A stretch of DNA of 64,000 nt from Oculina patagonica (taxonomy: Eukaryota): assembly GCF_052425735.1 (NCBI RefSeq), contig NC_135765.1:1364001-1428000 (forward strand), given 5' to 3'. Position 1 is the first letter of the stretch, and each line of letters opens with the position of its first letter. The notes below the pieces were generated by a model. It saw only the letters and a program-made list of their open reading frames with translations. It was not told the origin of the DNA and made no database searches. The position numbers and the translations under genes were made by a program. Below are positions 25,701-59,643 of this stretch, in pieces.

Positions 25701-28700
25701 CCAGTTAGTCTTTTCGACTTGCCCTGTTAATACCAACAAATGTCAAGAGCTATTACGAATGTCACCCCCTACTCCTCGTACATTTGCGGCTGTTTGCTCC
25801 CTGATTGGCAGGGACTTAAAAAACTAACACGAAGCCCGTGTGAAAGATGTTTTCAATTGGTAAAGGTGTGCCGTTTTTAACCGTGATGGTTAATCACCAA
25901 ATGGCGCCTTTTCCTCAGGGCACAAGGGAGATCAAGGCCCCCAAGGTGAAACAGGCCCAACTGGTCCTAAGGGCTCCAACGGAACACAAGGACCTCCAGG
26001 GGGACCTGGTGTCCAAGGACCAAAAGGTAAGATTTCCATAAAGGGTTATAAGTATTAAGGGTGGTGCTTCACCTGTGTTGCAAAGTCAATACGCACAGTG
26101 CTTATCGCTTTAGCCGTTAAAAAAATGAAATTAACCAATCAGAACCCGCCTCCAGAGCACGAAACCAAGGGAAAAAGTCGCGTGAGCCAATTACAGGTTA
26201 CGATTAGTTTTGGTTGTGGATCGTGGCGAAAATATTTAAATCCTTATTCTGATTTGTTAAGGAAGAACGAATTTAGTAAACTACTTATAAAGTTAATTAA
26301 ACTACAAACGCCGAAGTAAACCGGCACGCAATTTATATCAAAAGTCATTACGAAAGAAAAATAAATTTGACTGATAACAAGCAACTGAAGATTAACTTAC
26401 CGTTTTTTCGGTTTTGCTATTGTCCGTTTTACCATTCAAAGGTTAACGCCTCTCAGTTCATTTTCAAACGATGCCAATGCGTGTTCACTGTAGATTCAGC
26501 ACACTGAAACAGAACAATTATTATATTAGAAGTGACTCTCATAATACATGTGTCGTGTTTCAGGTGACACTGGACCCATAGGCCCACAGGGAATAGGAGG
26601 TAAAAATGGCTCTCAGGGCCCTCCAGGTGTCAACGGGGCCCCGGGTGCAATAGGGGCCAAGGGCGAAATGGGCCTCCAAGGACTCAAAGGAGACATAGGT
26701 AAGAACTTGTTTGCAATGGATATTGTTAGCTAATAAATAAATCACCTTTATTTAGACACGGTGAGGATTAAAGCTATAAGCGTGTGGGCCGTGTATTTCA
26801 AATTGAATTGGAATTTGGAAGTGTTGGTTTTTGTAGAGGGGGCAAAACCGGAGAACCCGGAAAAACCCTCGGAGCAATTCTTGGACGAGAACAACAACAA
26901 ACTCAACCCACATGTGGTACCGGGCCGGAATCGAACCTGGGCCACATTGGCGGGAGGCGAGCGCTCTCACCACTGCGCCATTCCTGCTCCGACACAACAT
27001 TATGTTGTTTTGAGGAAATACCTGAATCTTCCAAATTTAAGTCACTTTCTCTTGGGTATGCGTGTGTAACAGTCACTCAGTGCCAGTTGCACGTGTCGAT
27101 CACTATACACCGATGATCATCAAAACATCTATTTACCTTATTGTTACTTATTTTCGCGGGAACTTAATTTCGCGAAAATGGAACGGGGATATTTCGCGGG
27201 ACTTAAATTTCGCGATTTGGCCAAAAAATCGTAATTAACATAAAAAATACAATAGAAAACGTTTGAAATAAATTTTCGCGGGTCTTAAATTTCGCGATTT
27301 TTTGAAAATCGCGAAAACTAAGTCCAGCGAAAATAAGTAACAATAAGGTAGGTTTCTGTCGTAAAAGTCCCCGTTTCTTCTCGACGTTGTGCTTTTCGCT
27401 GCTTAGTAGAAGCACTATTCCATTCTTTGTTTTTCACTCAGAGCTACCTGCGGGAACATATAGTTACTGACTAATTTGATTTGTATTTCACTCTCACTTT
27501 TCAGTATTGTGTACTATTGTGAAACTTATACACATTTTCTATGTCGTGAATTGCAAGTGAATATACGGTAAAGACACGAAACGTTTGGTATAGGGCAAAA
27601 AATACCAAACATATTCCAGGGGCACTCAAAGTTCCTTTTTTGATCTTTTTTGTTCACAGGACCTCCTGGTCCGCCAGGCCAATCGGTAAGTAAAATACTG
27701 GCTGGCTTTTTTCTACACTATTGATACAAATTATTAACATAGAGTATAAGCCCCTGAAGGGATTTGAAACCTAGCGAGGTAAAGAGATCTTAATTTGACC
27801 TTGCGTAGTAAGACTCGAACACACTGCCGTAGGAATTGATCTTTCCTTTCCGTGGTGATTGAGCTTTATGCAGTGGTAGATTCTCGAGAACCAAGGTCTA
27901 AGACACTAAATTCATTACGCCCATTCATCAGTACTGTATAATTCTAATGATTTCTTTTGTTGCTATTTAGATGGGTGAAAGCATCCACCTTGTTGGTGAT
28001 GGCCACAAAATTCGAAATCCAAGTAATATGCTTTGTTATTGATTGACATTGACATCATATAACTAAATACACTGTAGTTCTTCTCACTGAGTGAAAACGC
28101 GCATGATTTGGAAACTAATCAAGTGCGAATACAGTAAAAGCCCGCGAGTAAGAACCTATTATTTTTCAGGTTAGCCTAAACAGGTTCTTACATAAAGGGT
28201 TATTAACACAAACTTAGGCTAATCAGGTTCTTAATAGGTCCTTAATTTCTGAAGAAAAAAATTTCAATACTTTTATAGAAATTTTAGTGGTATTCGGCCT
28301 ATTCCTTGTATAAAATTTGCATACCACATAAATGCTTACGTAAAAATGAAGCACTACTCATTTAGAATATGACATGATATACATGCACAGTAATGCTTTG
28401 TTCAAACTTATTTCCCAAAAGCAAACATTTTTAATCAATTTTAGAAAATAAGAACCTGTTTCCAAATTTTAGGCTAAATAGGTTCTTATAAAAAGGTATC
28501 TAATTTGCAAATTTTAGCCTAACAGGTTCTTAAATGTTAGGTTCTTACTCGCGGGTTTTTATTGTATTCGTCACCAGGTTCCCACCGCATTTCGAACTGG
28601 GTATTGAAACACAGTGAAGGCAGCATCGTGTACCACTCACCAACCGGACACATTGAGGTGAAGAGAAAAGGCTACTACTACATATACAGCCAAATGTACT

Positions 28701-28939
28701 ACTATGACGGTTCCACCATACAGATGGGTCACAACACCTATATCAATCATGAGAAGGTGATGGAAAGTGCGGGGAGCGTTATAAGCGCCGAACGAAAATA
28801 CAACACCAAGTATCATGGCGGCGTTTTCTTACTTCAGGAAAACGACACCATCTCCGTTCACATACCGTACACCACGCACTACTTCATGGACAGCGAGGGT
28901 AGCTTTTTCGGAGCGTTTTTGCTGCACTATATCGATTAG
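22703..28939 (+). CDS. G3: collagen-containing TNF superfamily ligand, ~368 aa, exons 22703-22984, 23136-23205, 24553-24597, 25405-25431, 25919-26026, 26564-26698, 27660-27685, 27971-28022, 28578-28939
   Basis: Exon 1 paralogous to G2 ([11 protein letters not shown]), furin RDRR, CPC, ~38 Gly-X-Y triplets including [18 protein letters not shown] strand A, and a THD exon ending in TAG. Phases are consistent (1107 nt). Confidence 0.9.
26790..26990 (-). mobile_element. tRNA-derived SINE in G3 intron 6
   Basis: On the - strand, tggcgcagtggtgagagcgctcgcc...ggttcgattcc (A/B-box-like head) followed by a non-tRNA body. Confidence 0.6.
27136..27348. mobile_element. TA-flanked MITE
   Basis: TA|CCTTATTGTTACTTATTTTCGC...GCGAAAATAAGTAACAATAAGG|TA. 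Confidence 0.7.
28132..28564. mobile_element. TA-flanked Tc1/pogo-type MITE ending 13 nt before the G3 THD exon
   Basis: TA|CAGTAAAAGCCCGCGAGTAAGAACCT...AGGTTCTTACTCGCGGGTTTTTATTG|TA. Confidence 0.72.
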
Positions 28940-30047
28940 ATTAGAAGGTCGAGGCCATAGGTAGGAAGTTAACCTCTAAAAGGTTAAGGTGCGGTTTGTA
29001 CTCCCCTTAATATCCCTAGCGGAATAGTGTAAGGAGCTTGTCGTCGCTGTCTTCGATCGTTCAAGTAAGGCATTAGGCTCGATAGAATAAGATCAGGCTT
29101 AGTTATCAAAATAAGGCTTAAAGGAGAATTTGCTGTCTCAGTTTAGGCTAGAATTCTGTTGTCTAAGATATCCAACCCGACCAGACGCCGTCTTTCTGTT
29201 TACCGGCCTAACGCAAACAATAATTAGTTATCCTACTGATGGATTATCCTTGTAAGTGTATTTGAAGGTTGTAATGTTATCCTGCAACTAATATCTCACT
29301 AGCTGCGCTAGCTTTCCGAAGGGTATAATGTAGAGATGTATTGTCCATGCTTAGACATCAGGATTACGATGTTGTGCCTGGTTGGCCTGTGGTCTCGATG
29401 CTGCCTGATCTGTGCCTCTTGCCGGTTCCACGACAACTCATTGGCTGATTTGTTATTCATTTAACCATCAACATCTTCTGCCTAACACGCATGAATAAAA
29501 AAACAGGCATGGAATTTACTTAATCACAAACTTTTTGTTGTTGTTTCTTTTGAAGATGTTTAATAGCGTACCCAGCAATGGGATACTGATTTTGTATATA
29601 TATATTCTGATGACTGTATCATGGGGTCGAAATTGTTCCTTGAAAGCAAATTATTCGATAGATTAATCGTGGATTGTTGAAGTGGCTAATCGACCAGTTA
29701 ATTAATTGACAAACATTTCACTGATTGAATGACTGAGTATGACTGATTGAATAATACGATCGATTGATCGACAAAATGATTGACAAACAGACAATACAAA
29801 GACAGACAGACAGGCAGAAAGCAGACACGATTGCCTTATGATCTTGAAACTGAGTTATGTGTTGTGACGTCATTTAAAATAATAAGTGCAAAGTTTTCAC
29901 ACAGTAGTTTTTACATTAATTTTAGTGGCTTTCATACTCAGAAAATGCATATCAAAGCCTCTTATGCCCTTGTTTTTAATTCATGATCAAAACAAAATTA
30001 AAATTCGCAGCGATTTCCTTATACCGACATTGGTGTTTGTTTCGCAG

Positions 30048-30409
30048 TATCTAGACGCACAGTTCGGAACTGGTTGGTGAAGTACAGATCAGGCAGAATT
30101 CAGCACCATAACGGGGTCATACAAGTACAAATATCTGGATTTTATTTCGTGTATTCCCAGATGTTTTACCATGATGGAACACCACTTCAAATCAGTCATC
30201 AGTTGTTCGTCAATTCAGAGAAATTCATGGAGAGTACATCTGCTGTTGTTAGTGTAGCTAGAAAATATAACACCAACTATCACGGGGGCGTCGCTTTTCT
30301 GAACACGACGGATCGCATTTCTGTCCGAACTCCATTTTCGACTCTATATTACATGAACCCAAGTTCTAGCTATTTTGGCGCATTTCTGCTTCATCCTACA
30401 ACACGTTAA
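30048..30409 (+). CDS. Extra intact TNF-homology-domain exon downstream of G3 (candidate alternative last exon of G3, or relic second THD)
   Basis: Acceptor tttcgcag at 30047, phase 1, open 362-nt frame (..RTVRNWLVKY..GFYFVYSQMFY..YHGG..YFGAFLLHPTTR*). No own TM or collagen exons lie upstream. Confidence 0.8.
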
Positions 30410-45000: not shown

Positions 45001-47519
45001 ACGGAATATCGTCTGATTTTAGCCAACTCGGCCTACGGCCTCGTCGGCTAAGTATCAGGCGATATTCCGCGCGATTTCGCAGGATAATTGCCAATTAATC
45101 AACTTCAGGATATTGTATCCATTTAATTACAAACAAATTGTTAAAACTAAAATGGTATTATATCAGAAAGGAAAATGAGTATTTTTAGACAAATCCAAAT
45201 TGCAGTCTACATTGTCTAGCCCAAAACGTGTATTGAAAACGAAACCTTCGTAACCAGATTATGATATATCCGTCTACAGGGGGACCTCCAGGTAAAGCAA
45301 CATTCATGTCTCCATATATTTTTTCTATTCGGAGAAGCGGTAACTTATGTCGGTCAGCCCAAGATTTTCTTAAAGATTTTTTTCCATTTCTTATCAAGTT
45401 TTGCCCTGGGGAAAATGTAACGGTCTTAGTGCTAGTTTACCTACTGTTTCTTGTTTTCTTTTTGATTTCGTCATAAGGGTTGCATAGTCTAGACTATTGT
45501 TTTGTTATGTGGTCTCCGTTTTCACATTATACTGCTGTATCTTTGACTTGTAGGATTGGATGGACCCCCGGGGGAACGAGGCGAGCGGGGAATGCCCGGG
45601 GCACACGGCCCTGCTGGCCCGGCTGGACCCCCAGGTAAGGAGTTTATAGTTTAGGAATGAAATTAATGAAGTCCTTAAAGTAGTTTCATTGTTTTACTAT
45701 TCTTTATGTCCACTTTTACACTTGAAACAAAACTGAACAATCAGAACAACGTATGGCGACGTTTTTGTAAACAGACCAATGACATTGAAGCATCGAGACA
45801 ATAATTGTCCTGCAACCTGAAAATTTGAAATCAAGTGAAGACAAATAAAGGTCTGATGTTTTACTTGAATTTGTATACTATATACGTTTCGCCCGTTATT
45901 TTGTACGGCGGAGTTGGATAATAATTTGGGTTATTGCCTTGATTCACAAAGGGGTTGCTTTAACAAGACGTGTTCGGCGCATGGACACAAGTGCTTGCCA
46001 AAGGCATTAGTGGTTCCACGATTTTAACTCGCAGACATACCGCAAACAATTTCCGTTTGGCAGGTTTTGGACAATTTTCTGCTAAACGAACGTTAAGAGT
46101 CCATGGCGGTCCAAGTTTGTTTCTGTTGCCACGCTTAGTCAAGTATCTTAGATCGACAACAAGTGAATTCAGTTTTTTTAATTTGCTAGCGCACAGGACT
46201 TTTTTTATTATTCGGCTACGTTCCAGCGCACGGGACACAAAGCTGTGAACAATAATAACAATAATGCAAAGAACTTAAAGAAATATATTCTCATGAATAT
46301 TCCGTTTGTTGTCGTCGCAGTTTCGGGTGCATACTCTTTACATATATACATAGTTAATGAGGGCAAGGGTCCTGCGCGTCCTTAAGTGTGTGTTTTGTTT
46401 TTCACATAGGATCAGATGGTCATGCGGGATCTGTGGTGAGTTCTACATTAACTTATCCACATATAATTTTCAAAGTCTGTAAATTCAATTTGTAAAGTCT
46501 GTAAATTAAGGTAAATACACGTGTTGTTGTTGTTGTCGTTTACAACTTCCATGTTAAGTATGCCCGACGCTGTTTTATTGATTGATTGATTGATTGACTG
46601 ATTGATTGACTGATTGATTGATTAATTGATTTATTTATATTTTGATATGACAGATCCATGAAAGTATCCACCTGGCTGGCAACGGACAAAAAAGTAAATG
46701 TATTTTACTTTTGTTTGGAAGAGATTCTCTAATCAGCACTTTTTTATGATTTTTATTTACATATGTTTTTTATTTGTCATGTCTTCTAGCGCGTTTTCTA
46801 TACAATGATTCCCACTGTCCCTTTCCAGTTCATGTAGTTGAAGAAAACTGATTTTAAAAATACTTTTTCGCGTTTCGTTGAGGCAAATGACTAACCAGAA
46901 ACTAGGAACATAACGATAGTGCAAAAGCAATGGGGGCTTTTTCTATTAGAAAAAGTAATTTTTATTCGCGGTTGCAGCGAAATTCTCTAAACTGCAGTTT
47001 GTCTGTTCTCTACTTGTCACGCAACGTTTCTTTCTTTTCTACATCGGCACCAAAGCATTGCGTGACACTATTTTCAACGGCCTCAAATGACACCATGTGA
47101 TTTTGTTTGCAGGTAACAGTCAACGTGTAACAAACTGGGCACTAAGGCACAGGGAAGGCAGTATCCTGTACAACCGAGTGACCGGACACATACAGGTGAA
47201 GAAACCAGGCTATTACTTCATATACAGCCAGATGTATTACTCTGATGGTAGCTCAACGTACATGGCTCACGCAACGCTCATCAATGACGAGAAAGTGATG
47301 GGAAGTGTTGGGAGCGTGATTAATTCCAAGAAGTTTTCAGAAACCAAGTATCATGGCGGAGTGTTCTTACTTCGGGAAAACGACACCATCTCAGTTCTCA
47401 TCTCATTCCGGCGTAATTACTACATGACTTCTAAGGAGAGCTTTTTTGGTGCGTTTAGGATTGGAGGTCCAGGAGCACAAGGTATCATACAATGGATGTC
47501 TACCATTCGCCATTATTGA
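33035..47519 (+). CDS. G4: long-collagen TNF superfamily ligand (up to ~474 aa), exons 33035-33226, 33350-33407, 34516-34587, 35859-35912, 36987-37040, 37707-37742, 38271-38315, 38623-38658, (38693-38737), 41954-41998, 42308-42343, 42849-42893, 43545-43580, (43615-43650), 43958-44038, 45554-45634, 46410-46435, 46654-46693, 47113-47481 (donor) or -47519 (stop)
   Basis: MEKKEK start, TM, furin RIRR, CTC, phase 1-1 collagen exons that are all multiples of 9 nt (up to ~81 triplets), IHESIHLAG strand [15 protein letters not shown]...FFGAF. Use of the bracketed exons is uncertain because they follow 34-nt introns. Confidence 0.85.
33714..34095. repeat. Minisatellite, ~37-bp unit x ~10, in G4 intron 2
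   Basis: Unit aaagcaggagtttctatttacgaattaagtaacaaac repeated head to tail with no spacers. Confidence 0.9.
34717..35065 (+). mobile_element. tRNA-derived SINE with an internal 21-bp tandem expansion (x ~9, ~34800-34990)
   Basis: Head cagcgcggccgagtgatttaaggcgctgg..ccgggttcaaatcc; unit gtttgttctcggttgtcccgt; related unexpanded fragments at ~48380-48700. Confidence 0.65.
35290..35760 (+). mobile_element. 5'-truncated LINE (CR1/L2-like) 3' end remnant
   Basis: Translates as LQIPLFRTAAGQRTFTYRAVNLWNSL..SLYSFK, typical of the end of ORF2 in CR1/L2 elements, followed by an AT-rich UTR and a (ttc)n tail. Confidence 0.6.
36612..36850. mobile_element. MITE with TIRs
   Basis: aggcctagtaaaacgag..aacatgtttcc / ggaagcatgttt..ctcgttttgccgggcct. 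Confidence 0.55.
38105..43920 (+). repeat. Three tandem, near-identical intron+collagen-exon units in G4 (~38105-38940, ~41780-42545, ~42680-43920)
   Basis: Each unit starts ctccaccttggaaacccggcgtttactat.., contains a 45-nt G..GY.G.KGEPGEK exon and a 36-nt exon, and has long identical intron stretches. Confidence 0.9.
39284..39745. mobile_element. Non-autonomous element with CCCGGGG...CCCCGGG ends
   Basis: G-run/C-run termini, internal tgtcctaaacagggt subrepeats, flanked by the direct repeat gcatgaaa. Confidence 0.55.
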
Positions 47520-48347: not shown

Positions 48348-49769
48348 GTAAGAACTTATTTTTTAAATTGTTTCAAAAGAGGCAGCGCGGCCGAGCGGTG
48401 TTGGGCGCTGGTGCTTATATATCTGGCAATCCGCTGGAGTTGCAGACTTATTGTATTTCTTTTAGGTTTTTAATTAATTCGATATAAGGCGCATTTGATT
48501 ACATCCATATTTTAATTTTCGCCGAACAAGCATTTAATTATTATAACATTAATATTATTACTTGTAATCCGGATTTCCCGGGTTTAAATCCTGCTTCCTG
48601 CGGCTGCCACTGGATGGATGCTTGTCCCGAATTCAACTCCTCCATACTTTGTATTTAGCCAACTGATCAGCCTCCTGCCAGTTGGGATTTTTAAATATGT
48701 AATATTTGTTTCATATACACGGCCCCACAAACTTCTAGCTTTGAACACAACCGTAAATAAAAGTATTTTACTTTACAGGTGCAGTCTAAGAACTGAATGC
48801 AGCATTGTCTTAGATGGATGATTACTGTTTGCATTAACTCATGGATTTAGACCTCACCTCACTGTATTGATTTGATTCCAGTGTGTATCCTGATGAATCG
48901 CGCTGATTGGTTCACAAGTTACGATGACCCGGATGATGAAAGATTCCACTTCAGCTTTTACTCTTAAAATAGAAAAAAAAAATGTTTGATTTGAGAACTG
49001 AACCACAGTTGATTTGATTATTGTGTACTGAAAAATATTATAATAGAACGTTTATAAGACAGTTTTCATATCTTTAACTGAGCGTATTTAAGTTAGTTAG
49101 ATCAAAGAGTTAACGCTGCAGTTTATATATCTGAATCATTCATTCAAATTCAATTTAGTAATACAACAAAAAAAGTATAAAAGACATCTTAGTTTTGGGG
49201 TTTTATTCTAGCGTTGTTTGAGGTCCTATCTCAGATTATGTTGTTGTTGTTATCTTAACGATTTGCGTCATTTTTCTCAGTATCAGCGGAAATGTTTTAA
49301 TCGGTTTTGAACTAAATTAAAGGAGGTAACGTTTGATTGACTTTTGTTTGTTTCATTAGCCTATGAGAAGCCTTGAAGAAATACGCGTGCCATTTTCTGA
49401 TTGGGTAATAATTGCCTTATTTGCCAGGTTCTTGAAGAAATTGTAGTTCTCCAATCAGAAAAGAGCACGTGTATTCAAACACTGTCACTTCAGATGGTAA
49501 TCATAAATACATATTAATTAAGGGAGCCACTGACAGCAATTGCGAAAGTCGTCGGTTTTTTTGGTGCGCGTTTACTCCAACCAGTGAGTTGGAGATCTCG
49601 CGATTAACTACTGGCGTTTTGAAGAGAACAGTTCACTTTTGGTTGCCGTCTGTGACTCCAAACCTGCAGTTCTGAATGAGGTGGATACTAACAGTAACTA
49701 AGCTAATCTAACTGTCGATTGGACAATACAAATCCATACCTTTTGTATTTCTTACTTTTTAGATTCGAA

Positions 49770-52040: not shown

Positions 52041-55000
52041 ATGGAAAAGAAAGAAAAGCAAAGCGGAGGGCAATTGCTTCCTGTTTTACTTGTTTGTATG
52101 TTGTTAGCTTGCGCGGGTCTTGTGTTTGCTATTTACACACACAGAGAACTCAGCTGGCTCAAAACCCAAATCCGTGAGCACGAGAAGCTCATACAGACCT
52201 TACAGCTCGGTAACAATGCTCGAGATATCCAGGTAGAAGACTCATTTTCCTGTTTGCATATTTCTGTAATTCAGTGAAAAGGTTTTGTTATTACGGAACT
52301 GTGCATCGTTTTTTATCAGTTTTGTTTATGTTTCGATTTCAGAGATCAGAGGCAGTTCGTGTCCGGAGAAGCGCTCAAGATTCTTGTACTTGCGTTGGTT
52401 AGTGCCCTGCTGTGTCTCAAATTTTTCTGTAGTAACAGTTTAGTATTCTATAGTAGTAGTTCTGTTTTTAGAGACATAATTTTGACAGACTCAGTTATCT
52501 GTCAAGTTTTATAAGTTGACAATTTATAGCCCTATCCAAGCCCTTAATCGATATCATGGGTTATTGCGTTTGACGTAAGAAGAACGCAACCTAATCCTGT
52601 CATTGCGTTCAATCACCGCTAGTATGTAAAGCCTCTGTAAAGGACCAAAACAAGTCCACATGGACCGCAGGAGGGGTGGGTGGGGATGGAGCTGTTCCCT
52701 CCTTTATCACAATTCGCTCATCCTCGGGATATTGTCGGCCCTCCAAGCTTCAGGCAAGCGTGTTCTTCACCGTCCGTAACCTGTTGTCTGTTTGCCATAA
52801 GGTGCTGGTTAATTTCACAGACATATGTGCAGTCTTGTCTGCATTCAATTTGTTCTATTTACTTCATCATTGACTTCTAGGAGCCCCAGGGAGACCGGGT
52901 CGGAGAGGGGAGCCTGGAAAACCCGGTCCTATCGGCCCCGCTGGCATTCAAGGTAAATATGCTGAAAATAATCACAGCGAACAACGTTCTTCTTACTTAC
53001 GTACAATTGTCTCATTGTTCTTCATTACACTTTTAAAAGAAATTATATTCCTCCGTTGATTATACATGGTCGAGCATAAACTTCATGAAGCTGCCATGAA
53101 ATATCATCATTTCATCATTTATTAGCCACTTTAAGATTGAAATATACAGAAAGAAACACCAATCTTATAGCCAAACTGTTTGAACCAAACTGTTTGAAAA
53201 AAAATAAAATTACATCACTTAGTAAGAAAAATTGGTGTTTATAGCTTGAGTGGACTGAGATAGGTTAAATTCAGATCGCAAAGGAATGTTGAGCCACAAC
53301 ACAGTGCAGTCTACATTTGATTAAAACTGATTATTACTTATCCAGTTAAATTTAGCCTTGACGTAATTGTGGTTAGCAATAAACATCCAGATTTTTTCAT
53401 CAATTTGATTTAGGTTTACCCGGACCAGTTGGTGTTCCAGGGCCGCAAGGCATCAAGGGAGACCGCGGGGATAGCGGTCCGCAGGGAGCCATGGGAAAGC
53501 CAGGTAAGATAGAGGCAACTCGTTCATACATTGTCTTTTAATTTTTCCACGCACGTAAACGCACGTATGTCTCACCGCGTTTTGGAGAAAATAACGCGTC
53601 AGTAGAAATCCACCTTAAGAAAAACAGGCGAAAACGCAAAAGGGTGGACCTGCGCCAGTCATCAGAATCCACTCTGTACTTAGTACCATGTTTGCGCCAG
53701 ATCCAGCCAAGAGAATAGCAAGAACTGGCGAATCTTCTGGAGCGCGCGTGAAGATCTCCGGCATGAGACTCATCACCGTACCACACACAAGACAACAACC
53801 GATAAATTCAGATTGAACACACACCTCGTTTCTGTCTTAAATTAAGTGATCTCCCTTGCACGCATCCCCGAATCAGGAGATAAATAATCACCGTTTCCTA
53901 GTCATATTTAAAGAGTTACACCAACTTTTTAAACGACCGTAAACATAAAATGTAGTATACGTTAAATATTACACAGGAACATTTATTAAACGTTATTTTA
54001 ATTATCAATAGGACCACCTGGCGTTACAGGATCTGCGGTGAGTAGTATAGTACAGTACAATTGCTGATCAAAACACATAATTATTCTCTTAAAAAAATCC
54101 CCTGTTGCGCACGTTAAAGCTGCCTTTTTTGTCTTTCAGATCCAAGAAAGTATCCACCTGGTTGGCAATGGACAACGAATAAGTAATGTTATTTGGGTTT
54201 TTTTTTTTGGTGTTTACTTTATTGGCTTTTTCTTATAACGGCGTATATAGAGACACCCATTCTTCCAAATGGGTGTTCGAAATGCTGTTAAAAAATTGAC
54301 ATTTGTTTACCCTCGGTAAATGATTTTGGCACAAGTGCTAATGGGCTGAGCATTTAAACATTAGAAACAAAAATTACAACTTAAAGGAGAAGCCTCGAGC
54401 CAAGTGGCCCATACTTGACGGAGCTTATCCCGGTTTCTGTAGCATTAAGCGGCTAGGAATTATACTACTCCCTCCTGAATGGGATGTAGTCCATCGCGCC
54501 TCGTCCATCGCAGGGTTACCCCACACAGCGGTCAAACGCAGCGCGCGTGCGCAGTTACTGTGCAATTCCCGCCAAACTTCTCCATACAAAGTCTTAAATT
54601 TTCCGAAAACTTTCGCTTTAATGCCAAAAGTTAACGCCGTCCCTGGAAAGTTAAGGTTTATACGCCGCTTATGGATTGGAAATTTGATAATTCATCTCCA
54701 CTGAGTGTCCCAGCTTGAACTGTTCTTTCACCGTACCATTTCTTTAACAATTTCCTACAAAAGTTTGCACACTTTCGAGACAAATTCTCAGAAAAGTTCG
54801 AGGCGCCGAAAACCGGAGGTGACGTCATTTTTGCGTTTGACCGCTGTGTGGGGTTACCCCCAGCATTATGTCGCCGGTACCCTTCACAGCGGTCATACGC
54901 AAAAATTGACGTCACATCCGGTCTTCACCGCCTCGAACTTTTGACTCGAAAGTGGGCAATTTTTTGTGAGAAATTGTTAAAGAAATAGTACGGTGAAAGA

Positions 55001-58000
55001 ACAGTTCAAGCTGGGACACTCAGTGGAGATGAATTATCCAATTTCCAATCCATAAGCGGCGTATAAACCTTAACTTTCCAGGGACGGCGTTAACTTTTGG
55101 CTTTAAAGCGAAAGTTTTCGGAAAATTTTAAACTTTGTATGAAGAATTTTGGCGGGAATAACACAGCAACTGCGCACGCGCGCTGCGTTTGACCGCTGTG
55201 TGCCGGTACCCATATATACACCTGGGTGGACAGCGGCACTATGAGAGTAAAGTGTCTTGCCCAAGAACACAACACAATGACCCCGGCCAGGCCTCGAACC
55301 CGGACCGCTCGATCCGGAGTTCGGCGGCGCACTAACCATTAGGCCACCGCGCCTCCCAAATTAAAAATTACAAATTAAGCATAACAATTAATGTCAAAAA
55401 TCCCAACTGGCGAACCAATTGCGTATTTACAAGGAGGAGATGAACTCGGCTTTACCGTGAAACAACTCCAGGAAGTGGTAAGAACGGGACTTAAATCCGG
55501 GAACTCCGAATTTCAAGTCTGGCGCCCAAACCGCCTCAGAAACGCTGCCTCTTTAATGTTCTTTACGAGTGTATTAATTCTTGGAACTTTGGCAAGTATT
55601 AGGCAAATACAAATAAAAAAATAAAAGACAAAAACTAATCTGGTAATCGATACCATAAAGAAGTCATAAACACCCCTTGCGCTCGCAAATACACAGAGAG
55701 ATCCGGGCGTTTCTAATTCTTGTCTACTAAAACTGAGTAGTTTTTAGTTCATTGGAGAATAATTTCACGGCAATGACGAAATTCATCAGCTGATCTCCCG
55801 TAGGCTGATATCGATATTTGTCATTATTATATAAACTGCAGTGGTATAGCGAGTGGTAGCACCTAGATAAAAATGGTATCACACATGTGTGGATAAAAAT
55901 GATATTCACAAATGTGTGATATCATTTTTGACCAATCAGCTCACAGTTTGCCACTTTTCAATGTTCAATGAGCCAAAGTTTATCGATATTAAGTCGAAAC
56001 ATCTTCGGATCTTCCTCGGCAATCTTTGGTATCACACTCGAAGATAAATTTCACTCGTGAGCTATCGATTTGAACACTCGAAGATAAATTTCATATCTCC
56101 GTGCAACCATGTATTATCCTCTATTTATCCAACGATTTTCTCTTCTCTCCATTAGAAGAAGCATTACAAGGTATCATAAGTAAAAACCAATCGTGATTTC
56201 TTTTGCAGTTTCTGAAAGGCAAACAATTACCAACTGGGACATCAAGCACGTGGAAGGCAGTATCTTGTACCACTCGCCATCCGGACACATTGAGGTGAAG
56301 AGAAAAGGCTACTACTTCATATACAGCCAAATGTATTACTTTGACGGCTCCCCCTTTGTAATGAGTCACAGCACCTACATAAATAAAGTTCGGGTCATGG
56401 AAAGTTCGGGGAGCGTTATAAGCACCCATCGGAAGTACAACACAAAATATCATGGCGGCGTTTTCTTACTTCAGGAAAACGACCTCATCTCCGTTCACAC
56501 ACCATTCTCGGCCAAGTACCACATGGATAGCAAGCGTAGCTTTTTTGGAGCATTCCTTTTTGGAAATGCAGAAAGGCAAGGTAAACATTCATTGATTGAT
56601 TGCTTGATTGATTCATTCATTTACTAGGTAATTACACTGAAGAACCTCTGGACGCACTAAATTTTTTGACTAGATGTGTTTCTGAAAAAATCGTTGTTGA
56701 GTTTAAGGATGCATCTGTGGAGCTCTAAAATGACCACAAACTGTGACTAAAAATTTTTAACTCATCCGGTCCGACGTTTCGCAACCGACGGACCTCATAG
56801 GCTTGATATCTTGGGTGGTCGCTGTCGGGAGGTTCGACTGTCCGCAAATCATTTCAGTATTTAATTCATAATTTCGCTACGAGAATGTATATATGGGCAC
56901 GTAAAACAAAATTGCTAATTACTCGGCTATTAAAAAATGAAGGTTCAATACTAGTTTTACTGGAACTCTATCCACCGAATTTTGAGCCGTACGAATAAAC
57001 AAATACATGTGATGCTCTGCCAATGCGACTGAGCTATAAAGCAGTAATGAACAAGTCAAAGGGGAGTTCAGAAGTCATACACATGGGCTGTCGATAGAGA
57101 TCTTCGCAAGGCAGATGTAAAGCTAGATAGCACAGAAAATCTTAGTGAGGCAAATCCACATTAACGGCTTGGTAACTGTTAATTTTAAATAGCAATAAAC
57201 TTAACTTAAAAGTGTTATTTACAGTGGAGTTCTTTTCTTACTTTCAGTGCTTTCTCCTCCCACAACCCTACCTCCTACTACACTAACGGGTAAGTTGCGA
57301 GGGGCCTTAGGAGGTAAAATTGGAACTGAGATATGCACAAATTTTCACTGGGAAAATGGATTTGGGTCACTGGGACTCGGAATCACAAACAAAAAACAGT
57401 GAAACTGGGAATGGGATTTGGGAAAATTTGGGAACCAAAAGGCTGGGAAATGGGATATGTACCCCCCCCCCCCTCCTTCAGGACCCTCCGTTGACGTTAT
57501 TCGTTTGATTACGTCACTAGACCATTTATTGTGTGTTTGAATGCTGTTGCTTAGATGTACGAGCCCGCCACCAATGTTTTAGCACACTGTGAGAATTAAA
57601 ATGTCTGCTTCCTTATTCATTCAGTTGCAAATTGCAAGACATCATGTGTTAACAATCACGAGAAGGGAATTATTTGCATCTGGTTTGGTTTTAACTGGGA
57701 ATCTCTTTTTTTTTTCTTTTTCTGAGAAAAAGGAGCGAAGCCAACCACATCGGTAAGAATTCTGTTTTTTACCTTTTTCCAGACTAGGTATAACTTGAAA
57801 ACCACTTGTTTTAATAAGTGATTGCTAACTTTGTAGGGGCAGTGATAGAGACCAAACTAACACGTCCCATCGGTGTCTCCCAATCTCCTCACACTCAGGG
57901 GAAATGGTTGCTAATACAACTTTATTCTTGTGTGGACTTGTACGCAGTTTCAGCGTGCTTACTTGGTCTGAGCCTGTTTATCTCATATCATTTTTCCTGT

Positions 58001-59015
58001 TCTTCTCATTTGTATTCATTCAAATAGTGACGAACTTTATCCGTTTACCGGACCTGTTTTTTTTCTTAAGGTAAGAGCAAGCATCTACTTAGCTGGAGAT
58101 GACACAAGCCTTCGAAATCCTGGTAAGTGAGGTTCATTATTAACCCGTCAGTTTATTCCTGTCATTTCATGTCACCCGAAGATATTGAGTTCAAATAAAT
58201 CATGCTGAACCTTTTTGAGGGGCCTGACGGGGTAAAATGGGAACTGGGACTTGGGCAAATTTTCACTGGGAAAATGAGATTTGGGTCACTGGGACTGGGA
58301 ATCACAAACAAATAAACAATAGAACTGGGAATGGGATTTGGACAATCGGAAAAACAATAGGATGGGAAATGGGTTTTGGGGCAAAATTGGGGCTGGGAAA
58401 TGGGATTAATAATTAAATGGGACTGTCGTTTTTGAATGCCGTTTATTTTCGTAGAGGTTTAAGTTTCGTTTATTCCCTTCACAGTCGCAGTTAAACCTTC
58501 AGCCCATGTTAGAAGCTTTTTACGAAATTTAAACCTTGCAAAAATAGATGTCATAAAACTCGCGCACTCCTTTTCATATTTATATAGCGTTCGTCTCAGC
58601 CCATTATATTCAAACATAACTAATCACGGATTGAACATTTTGTTTGTTAACAGTTAGTCATATCATAGCAAACTGGATTGTTCGCGACAAGATAGGCTCC
58701 ATTCAATACGACAGAGGCTTTATTATAGTCACGACACCCGGACACTACTTCATATACAGCCAAATGTACTATCACGACGCGCGCACACATGTAATGGCAC
58801 ATCACACTTACATCAACAATGAAAAGGTCATGGAAAGTATTGGAAGTTCAATCACTGATAGCACAAAGGACAACACCCGATATCATGGCGGAGTATTTCT
58901 TCTTCGAGTGAATGACACCATATCAGTTCGCATTCCGTACATCCGGGAATACAACATGAAAACTGACGCCAGCTTTTTCGGAGCGTTTCTGCTGTATCCT
59001 GGTGAATCACGCTGA
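52041..59015 (+). CDS. G5: collagen-containing TNF ligand with two tandem TNF homology domains, ~429 aa, exons 52041-52232, 52343-52397, 52881-52952, 53414-53503, 54012-54037, 54140-54182, 56209-56580, 57727-57752, 58071-58122, 58654-59015
   Basis: Exon 1 is nearly identical to G4. Furin RVRR, CTC, 21 Gly-X-Y triplets, IQESIHLVG plus THD1 ending CAAG|gtaaac, linker EKGAKPTTS, second strand-A exon VRASIYLAGDDTSLRNP, THD2 ending TGA. Total 1290 nt in frame. Confidence 0.82.
54522..54850. mobile_element. MITE copy 1 (TIR CACACAGCGGTCAAACGCA, 9-bp TSD GGGTTACCC)
   Basis: TIRs and TSD read directly from the sequence. Confidence 0.8.
54883..55202. mobile_element. MITE copy 2, inverted relative to copy 1 (9-bp TSD CCGGTACCC)
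   Basis: Reverse complement of copy 1 with few differences; TSD at 54874-54882 and 55203-55211. Confidence 0.8.
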
Positions 59016-59643
59016 TTGGATCACAAGAAACGATTTACGATCACGAAGAATAGATGATATTACTGTAGCTTTTACTCGTAAATTAGCGAAATAGCCCTAA
59101 TTTGAGAACTGATCGAAACACAATTGATTTGATTTTTGTCGTATGAAAAACGAATATTATACCAGAATGTTTTTAAGACATTTGCACGTATTTTAATGAG
59201 TCGAGTTAAAAATAGTTAATGCTACAATTTGTATACCTTTATCATTTATTAAAATGCAAGTCAATACAATTGCATATGTCAGTGTAGAAACAATATATAA
59301 TAATCCTAATGTTTTGTTTAAAGTCCTTTTTCAGATCATTTGCTGTAACCTGGTAAAATTGCTTCTTCAAAATTGAATATTACTTATATCTCAATTTTTA
59401 GCTTTTATTTTACCTGATGTAAGTGTATACCTAATTACTGATATATTTCACTAGTTTTTAAACTTAATTACAAGAAATAATCATTTGATTGACTTTTTGT
59501 GCGTTTCATTGAGAACATTGTCTACTACGCCTGCGATTAAACTCGGCAAGCTCGTGCGAATTTTGAAGAAATACGCGTGTTAATTTCTGTATCAATCATG
59601 ATTATTACTAACCTTGCTACCCGAATAATTTACAGTGCTCAGT

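Follow-up and report, generated by a model that had tools for sequence, protein, structure and literature searches.

An EDA-like gene of the coral Oculina patagonica with two predicted tandem TNF homology domains on a collagen stalk

The present study deals with G5 (ACROYT_G026998), a TNF-family gene located in a stretch of 64,000 nucleotides (nt) of the genome of the coral Oculina patagonica (assembly GCF_052425735.1, contig NC_135765.1, positions 1,364,001 to 1,428,000 of the forward strand), which is referred to here as the window. G5 is a single gene with 11 exons which encodes an EDA-like type II membrane protein of 443 amino acids (aa), and it is likely to make a single chain in which two TNF homology domains (THD1 and THD2) follow each other behind a collagen stalk. 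The reading frame, the domains, the conservation of the layout, the purifying selection acting on both THDs and some of the splice junctions were directly observed. A previous reading of the window from its sequence only had proposed such a chain with a transmembrane (TM) segment, a furin site, collagen and two THDs, and the proposal is supported by the conservation of splice sites and phases, by selection, by a spliced contig of the sequencing run X7 and by a GenBank model.

Gene structure and protein organization

All the exon borders which the sequence-only reading had named for G5 were found in the sequence (window coordinates are used, and all the exons lie on the + strand). On direct joining, its ten exons gave 1290 nt, or 429 aa, with compatible phases and zero internal stops, as it had claimed. 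The linker model was correct with respect to the 26-nt and 52-nt exons, which are real, and it had missed a 42-nt exon at 57248-57289, the addition of which leads to the 11 exons and 443 aa given below.

Exon 1, 52041..52232, +: start codon, short cytoplasmic tail, type II anchor at aa 13-31 LPVLLVCMLLACAGLVFAI, coiled-coil-like stretch
Exon 2, 52343..52397, +: furin-type motif RVRR at aa 70-73; CTC cysteine pair ahead of the collagen
Exon 3, 52881..52952, +: collagen G-X-Y repeats
Exon 4, 53414..53503, +: collagen G-X-Y repeats
Exon 5, 54012..54037, +: 26 nt, end of the collagen stalk
Exon 6, 54140..54182, +: 43 nt, strand A of THD1 IQESIHLVGNGQRI
Exon 7, 56209..56580, +: body of THD1, stop-less, ends CAAG/gtaaac
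Exon 8, 57248..57289, +: 42 nt, tttcag/gtaagt borders, phase-neutral, Pro/Thr-rich linker VLSPPTTLPPTTLT
Exon 9, 57727..57752, +: 26 nt, linker EKGAKPTTS, acceptor ctgAG
Exon 10, 58071..58122, +: 52 nt, strand A of THD2 VRASIYLAGDDTSLRNP
Exon 11, 58654..59015, +: body of THD2, ends in TGA
3' untranslated region (UTR), 59016..59259 at least, +: spliced contigs extend to 59078-59112; aligns with L004, L005 (coral loci introduced below) and the remnant behind G4

Hydrophobicity predicts a type II topology for G5, with a single membrane anchor at the N-terminus and the C-terminus outside the cell. The anchor was called by Kyte-Doolittle hydrophobicity in a 19-aa window, in which the maximum of 2.79 was found at aa 13 and the next best value elsewhere was 0.81. 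GenBank KAL9963487.1 begins with exactly the residues encoded by exon 1. The RVRR motif, situated between the anchor and the collagen, fits the pattern R-X-[KR]-R and is a putative site of furin cleavage; the ortholog in locus L004 has RFRR at the same place. The collagen stalk comprises 21 uninterrupted G-X-Y triplets (aa 83-145), and the Pfam Collagen family matched the protein P0235 with 37.2 bits against a cut-off of 27.2.

The THD1 exon was confirmed to run without a stop into its CAAG/gtaaac donor, and reading past this donor at 56580 leads to the predicted stop at 56627, 15 codons on. From the last strand of THD1 to the first strand of THD2 the 443-aa model has a linker of 32 residues, of which 44% are Pro, Thr or Ser and to which the tail of THD1 and the two micro-exons contribute. 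Exon 8 in this region carries a strong acceptor as well as a strong donor. Since the exons of 42, 26 and 52 nt encode no Met, signal or TM segment between THD1 and THD2, translation of THD2 is possible only via the upstream exons of G5.

The two matches to the Pfam TNF family (PF00229) which had been expected in the spliced protein were obtained, with 46.6 bits for THD1 and 57.3 bits for THD2 (cut-off 23); inside P0235, THD2 reached 64.4 bits. The two THDs are 52% identical to each other and are present in one frame of G5 without a second anchor between them, likewise in the coral loci L003-L006 and in the full open reading frame (ORF) of L004. The C1q family (PF00386) gave no match on either THD of G5, and the paralogs G3 and G4 remained at 16.7-17.1 bits, under the cut-off of 23.7.

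Structure prediction was run on THD2 alone as a homotrimer and gave a value of 0.92 in comparison to 0.22 for the best control, which may be the model's memory of solved TNF trimers. The predicted local distance difference test (pLDDT) of the partner was at least 86, and the runs agreed in at least 92% of the contacts. In the calibration, the mark for a homotrimer was reached by 21 of the 30 solved homo-pairs and by none of the 23 single chains.

Conservation of the layout in other corals

The layout of a stop-less THD1 exon, a donor, one or more small linker exons, a 52-nt exon and THD2 was found to recur in five loci of four other assemblies. These are L003 (ENA ERZ25067556), L004 and L005 (two copies on a single contig of ERZ25067872), L006 (ERZ26692694) and L010 (Desmophyllum pertusum GCA_029204205.1, contig MU825400.1). 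THD2-like exon ORFs with 71-91% identity were also found in many assemblies. In L003-L006 the THD1 exon is stop-less with its donor in the same phase, reading AAG/GTAAAC in three of them and AAG/GTAATA in one, and the THD1 donor of L010 is likewise CAAG/GT. The strand-A exon before THD2 measures 52 nt in every locus. The homologs of exon 9 vary in length (26 nt in the window and in L004, 23 in L005, 32 in L003 and 29 in L006), each being 2 mod 3, and the acceptor of this exon is GAG in the window in comparison to TAG in the relatives. Similarly, exon 6 is conserved in L003, L004 and L006 with 49, 34 and 52 nt, each 1 mod 3, and exon 8 and its splice sites are conserved in L005 (42 nt) and, lengthened to 57 nt by a 15-nt in-frame indel, in L004. 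The frame from THD1 to THD2 is open in the window, L003, L004, L005 and L006. The layout is beyond chance because the same frame-preserving arrangement recurs in other coral genomes, and this comparison of sequences indicates that selection maintains it in several coral species.

Gene order identifies L004 as the syntenic ortholog of G5. Its collinearity with the window extends from the 5' end of G5 into the next gene, and the locus contains a complete 11-exon ORF of 442 aa, in which anchor, RFRR, collagen, THD1, linker and THD2 are all present. Directly beyond the end of the window lies another collagen-TNF gene, G6 (L002 7114-7572; G000:C8:1435114-1435572), whose THD protein is nearly identical to the THD behind the THD2 of L004, and this match confirms the synteny of L004 with the window.

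Selection was estimated by the Nei-Gojobori method as dN/dS, the ratio of nonsynonymous to synonymous substitution rates. For THD2, for which this check had been proposed, the ratio was found to be 0.10-0.17 between assemblies, and 0.38 when the paralogous copies L004 and L005 were compared. THD1 gave 0.09-0.38 and the linker about 0.2-1.1; the sequence of the linker is apparently near neutral and yet its frame is constrained. The nonsynonymous rate itself (dN) was 0.05-0.18 in THD2 and 0.21-0.36 in THD1, and such a slow THD2 beside a fast THD1 would fit different receptor partners for the two heads, although it is no proof of them. The O. patagonica assembly has a single copy of THD2. In the THD tree every THD2 falls in one clade with a support of 100/100, the THD1s are interleaved with single-THD paralogs, and the THD1 of L003 groups with the window's gene G4 (support 96/96). 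On account of this topology, the THD2 cassette is older than the duplications which gave rise to G4 and G5.

Transcript evidence

Four runs of unknown type were examined in the form of Logan contigs, which give no isoform proportions and no transcript ends; no run recorded as RNA contains the stretch. The four runs hold spliced sequence, with GT..AG joints at 53503>54012 (X1 and X7), 54037>54140 (X1) and 58122>58654 (X1). A variant of the last joint, having TAAGC at 58654-58658 instead of the TTAGT of the assembly, is present in X1, X7 and X10, and X1 has both forms; this difference in the first bases of THD2 is due either to allelic variation or to the presence in the samples of a closely related taxon.

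The two domains are linked by one 677-nt contig of X7. Its positions 1-132 hold 56455-56580 and end exactly at the THD1 donor, and its positions 258-677 hold 58659-59078. The gap between the donor and THD2 is 125 letters long, which is equal to the sum of 42, 26 and 52 nt and 5 variant letters. The 52-nt part of this gap is backed by a joint row of equal depth with 53 letters on its short side; the letters of the remaining 68 could not be read, and we infer that these are exons 8 and 9. The chain of junctions by which the sequence-only reading was to be checked has, therefore, been recovered in part: 58122>58654 was seen and the spacing of the X7 contig fits, and the joints of the micro-exons were not among the 15 listed.

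Several observations weigh against a two-THD product. The linking contig of X7 comes from a related organism with about 93-97% identity. In the own-species runs, none of the joints 56580>57248, 57289>57727 and 57752>58071 is among the 15 listed (53 were not listed), where only 58122>58654 and the upstream joints appear; the 42-nt and 26-nt exons are too short for anchoring by the method of joint detection. Unspliced contigs of X1 run across the introns at 56551-57275 and 57732-58099. The acceptor of the 26-nt exon (exon 9), GAG, is weak, and the frame would be broken if this exon were skipped. The GenBank model of the gene drops 60 residues of THD1, corresponding to a GT..AG piece at 56295-56474 (180 nt). 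In D. pertusum, L010 (12429-12775 and 14694-15054) has the same layout with 1-bp homopolymer indels, two in THD1 and also in THD2, by which the annotated protein OS493_010215 is derailed; these are probably homopolymer assembly errors, though decay is possible. A junction pattern from THD1 to the 42-nt exon, or from the 26-nt to the 52-nt exon, was searched in JGI metagenome contigs and gave nothing or three THD-less chance matches, and protein searches bounded by length returned genomic exon ORFs only and zero spliced transcripts.

Alternative explanations

An unlikely explanation, though the best placed of the rivals, is that the exons behind THD1 are alternative 3' cassettes, so that two single-THD isoforms dominate (THD1 running to the stop at 56627, and exon 5 joined to exon 10) and the two-THD form is minor at most. 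Exon 5 and the 52-nt exon meet in phase 0, and a THD2-only isoform made by skipping exons 6-9 (54037>58071) would therefore also have an open frame. Moreover, the unspliced contigs of X1 continue beyond the THD1 donor, and the orphan THD exon of G3, behind a THD exon which ends in a stop, resembles an alternative last exon. However, this explanation gives no account of the stop-less THD1 with a donor of the same phase in other loci, or of micro-exons in which splice sites and frame have survived indels. The read-through tails past the THD1 donor are not conserved among the compared loci, the joint 54037>58071 is absent among the joints listed, and one spliced contig links THD1 to THD2. Only a route through THD1 explains why THD1 is conserved without a stop, why its donor is kept and why the linker exons preserve the frame. 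The two-THD form and an exon-skipping form with THD2 only may, all the same, coexist.

It is considerably less probable that only THD2 works, the 180-nt piece being removed as an intron and THD1 left as a crippled spacer, so that in effect each chain would have one THD. The basis for this is KAL9963487.1 (ACROYT_G026998, hypothetical protein, 383 aa), which was recovered by a cluster look-up of the relatives of THD2 and is the 443-aa model minus exactly aa 189-248; the removed piece has GT..AG borders with a good acceptor. The same model uses the 42-nt exon, the 26-nt exon with its GAG acceptor, the 52-nt exon and THD2. On the other hand, the 60 codons removed show a dN/dS of 0.20-0.26 and contain the most conserved THD motifs, and a contig of X1 spans 56241-56477 without gap or mismatch. 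In the paralog G3 the coding sequence itself yields the same GT and AG. An odd splice inside the THD, removing or replacing conserved sequence, is also seen in the G4 model of GenBank (ACROYT_G026997, P0226), which makes the annotation unreliable at that level. Because of the dN/dS of these codons, the uninterrupted X1 contig and the odd G4 model, the internal splice in THD1 of KAL9963487.1 is doubted; it is probably wrong or a minor form, and the intra-THD splices of both KAL9963487.1 and ACROYT_G026997 are probably errors of the gene models.

That THD2 is a separate gene or the decaying leftover of a partial duplication, with a coincidentally open frame, is highly improbable, for although partial tandem duplicates are common in the array and in G4 the THD2 is gone, a 3' UTR remnant being all that is left, the THD2 of G5 is under strong purifying selection with orthologs in many assemblies, is joined by splicing to exon 10 in contigs derived from RNA, occurs once in the assembly and has no start codon or signal upstream of it save those of G5 itself.

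Proposed origin and assembly of the ligand

For the preferred reading, in which G5 makes a two-THD chain, the following origin and assembly can be proposed. An ancient duplication of a 3' cassette, consisting of the last collagen exon, the strand-A exon and the THD exon, would have produced the second THD; the duplicated collagen exon would then have decayed to the linker, and THD1 would have lost its stop and gained a donor. The previous reading had seen in the 26-nt, 52-nt and 362-nt exons a whole copied cassette of the last three exons of its sister genes. This stands in so far as the last two exons of G3 measure 52 and 362 nt and exon 5 of G5 measures 26 nt, the comparison being limited to these.

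In ligands of the EDA type with a collagen stalk three chains associate, and the THDs adjacent to the stalk form a trimer. The collagen stalk of G5 may similarly gather three chains, whose three THD1s would form a proximal, EDA-like trimer, and three THD2s on flexible and probably O-glycosylated tethers could form a second trimer. Furin cleavage would then release a particle with two different trimeric heads for receptor binding. Mixed trimers of THD1 and THD2 are another conceivable arrangement, as linkers of 19-37 residues would also permit neighbouring positions, in the manner of the engineered single-chain ligands. Corals have very large families of TNF receptors (TNFRs), which the literature links to stress and apoptosis responses. 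Further, it is possible, though rather doubtful, that the THD2 trimer binds one conserved coral TNFR and the THD1 trimer another, making G5 a natural bispecific, hexavalent bridging ligand.

Comparison with known ligands

Textbook TNF ligands have a single THD per chain, and the strength of their signalling depends on the number of trimers presented together. EDA (EDA-A1/A2) shares with G5 the type II anchor, the furin-type site before a collagen G-X-Y stalk and the THD thereafter, whereas it has one THD per chain and G5 adds a divergent THD on a Pro/Thr-rich tether; the likeness is one of layout and sequence match. EDA-A2 and EDA were the best natural sequence matches with solved structure for both the THDs (E 1e-10 and 7.6e-9), followed by BAFF, TRAIL and FasL, and NCBI names paralogs in other corals ectodysplasin-A-like.

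The top PDB sequence match of both G5 THDs, with two matched stretches, was the engineered single-chain APRIL-BAFF-BAFF (PDB 4zch), in which THDs also lie head to tail with flexible linkers on one polypeptide. In contrast to G5, with its two THDs per chain and an expected assembly of three chains, proteins of this type are artificial and stalk-less, with three THDs per chain in one trimer. To our knowledge, the design of a bispecific hexavalent TNF ligand has so far been made only by protein engineers. Two THDs per chain are also present in vertebrate TWEAK-APRIL (TNFSF12-TNFSF13) read-through models (P0062, P0081, P0107, P0108, P0131 and P0139), but these join two complete neighbouring genes with a second anchor between the THDs, and G5 is without a second N-terminal module. 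In C1QTNF4/CTRP4 each chain has two tandem C1q domains, which are jelly-roll trimerising domains of the C1q/TNF fold; this protein belongs to the C1q family and not to TNF, and the THDs of G5 give no C1q match.

A search for the Collagen+TNF+TNF architecture, which had been advised, was made with a profile across 1.84 billion representative proteins. The 29 closest representatives to the THD profile were all single-THD, and a search with P0002 found single-THD coral proteins only. The proteins P0193 (Stylophora) and P0209 (Porites) were considered as the same architecture and rejected, as each merges two whole genes. Outside the corals the search did find collagen with two THDs. Ptychodera flava XP_070553352.1 is similar to G5 in having an N-terminal anchor, collagen repeats and two THD-like regions, and so are Oscarella lobularis XP_065841265.1/XP_065841264.1 and Oscarella pearsei EP00118_P010623. 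These models belong to distant phyla, their sequence is far from the THD profile (E 1e-12 to 1e-19) and Pfam detects only the second THD in the Oscarella models; their collagen and two THDs probably arose independently of the coral gene.

The general idea of multi-THD TNF ligands is not new, and the supposition that the architecture had not been described does not hold in general, in view of these models and of a preprint on the TNF superfamily (TNFSF) (10.1101/2024.07.27.603686). According to the preprint, there are invertebrate TNFSF proteins which have 2, 3, 4 and 9 THDs (10.1101/2024.07.27.603686), including Hydra vulgaris A0A8B7DK70, A0A8B7E4M2 and A0A8B7E873 (9, 4 and 9 THDs), Crassostrea virginica A0A8B8AD19 (2) and the ostracod Darwinula stevensoni A0A7R9A6L1 (3). 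Like G5, these Eiger-like proteins have more than one THD per frame; they are database models from other lineages, and the text of the preprint lacks the word "collagen", whereas G5 is conserved across genera with its constraint measured. No transcript or selection evidence for the multi-THD proteins was seen in the accessible part of that source (10.1101/2024.07.27.603686).

What is new in our study is the EDA-like coral orthogroup, which is conserved and constrained, together with the linker made of micro-exons and the route of origin. This route would run from duplication of the 3' cassette through loss of the stop to decay of the collagen exon into a linker, with a reversion in the sister gene G4. 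G5 also offers a testable case of a natural collagen-bundled two-THD ligand, which may have higher-order or dual-specificity presentation built in; if the bispecific reading is true, one particle could bridge or co-cluster two receptor types. Further, probable errors in the GenBank models of the cluster have been flagged.

The surrounding TNF gene cluster

Seven THD exons, all on the + strand, are present in the window at about 7880, 17628, 28580, 30050, 47118, 56208 and 58653, and at least 37 THD matches were found in the 529-Mb genome. The THD exon of G4 (47091-47519) has no immediate stop and ends in GAQ at a CAAG/GT donor, with the read-through stop 12 codons later. Behind G4, at a distance of about 1.4 kb, lies a 270-nt remnant (48884-49153) which is 70% identical to the 3' UTR of G5 (58993-59259); this 3' UTR remnant is all that was found there, and no linker exons or THD2 remain. 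Judging from these traces, G4 looks like a former two-THD gene which has lost its cassette. The THD1 of L003, with which it groups, still has a downstream THD2.

The THD exon of G3 (27971-28939) is closed by a stop of its own (28937-28939). An intact, divergent THD exon (30047-30409) follows 1.1 kb further on, with an acceptor, without a preceding 52-nt exon and on a long branch of the tree, and it may be an alternative last exon. Elsewhere in the genome, a pair of THDs at C8:10875874-10877356 (L001 5874-6272 and 6958-7356), which lie on one strand 0.7 kb apart, was considered as a fused chain and rejected, since a stop follows each THD; the two exons may belong to separate genes or serve as alternative last exons. 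The THD of ACROYT_G026995 is identical to that of the second gene of the window.

Repeated sequences were also noticed in the introns of G5. Intron 6 contains, at 54513-55211 of the window, an inverted repeat of 272 nt with 93% complementarity and 155 nt between its arms, and the adjoining stretch at about 55180-55380 has a summed contig depth of 10,000-31,000 in all four runs; both are repeat elements in a long intron. An element of about 100 nt is present twice, at 57299-57396 and 58217-58315, in the introns after exons 8 and 10, with 85-87% identity between the copies. The second copy sits in a bin of high contig depth, and the element is likely to be a dispersed short repeat.

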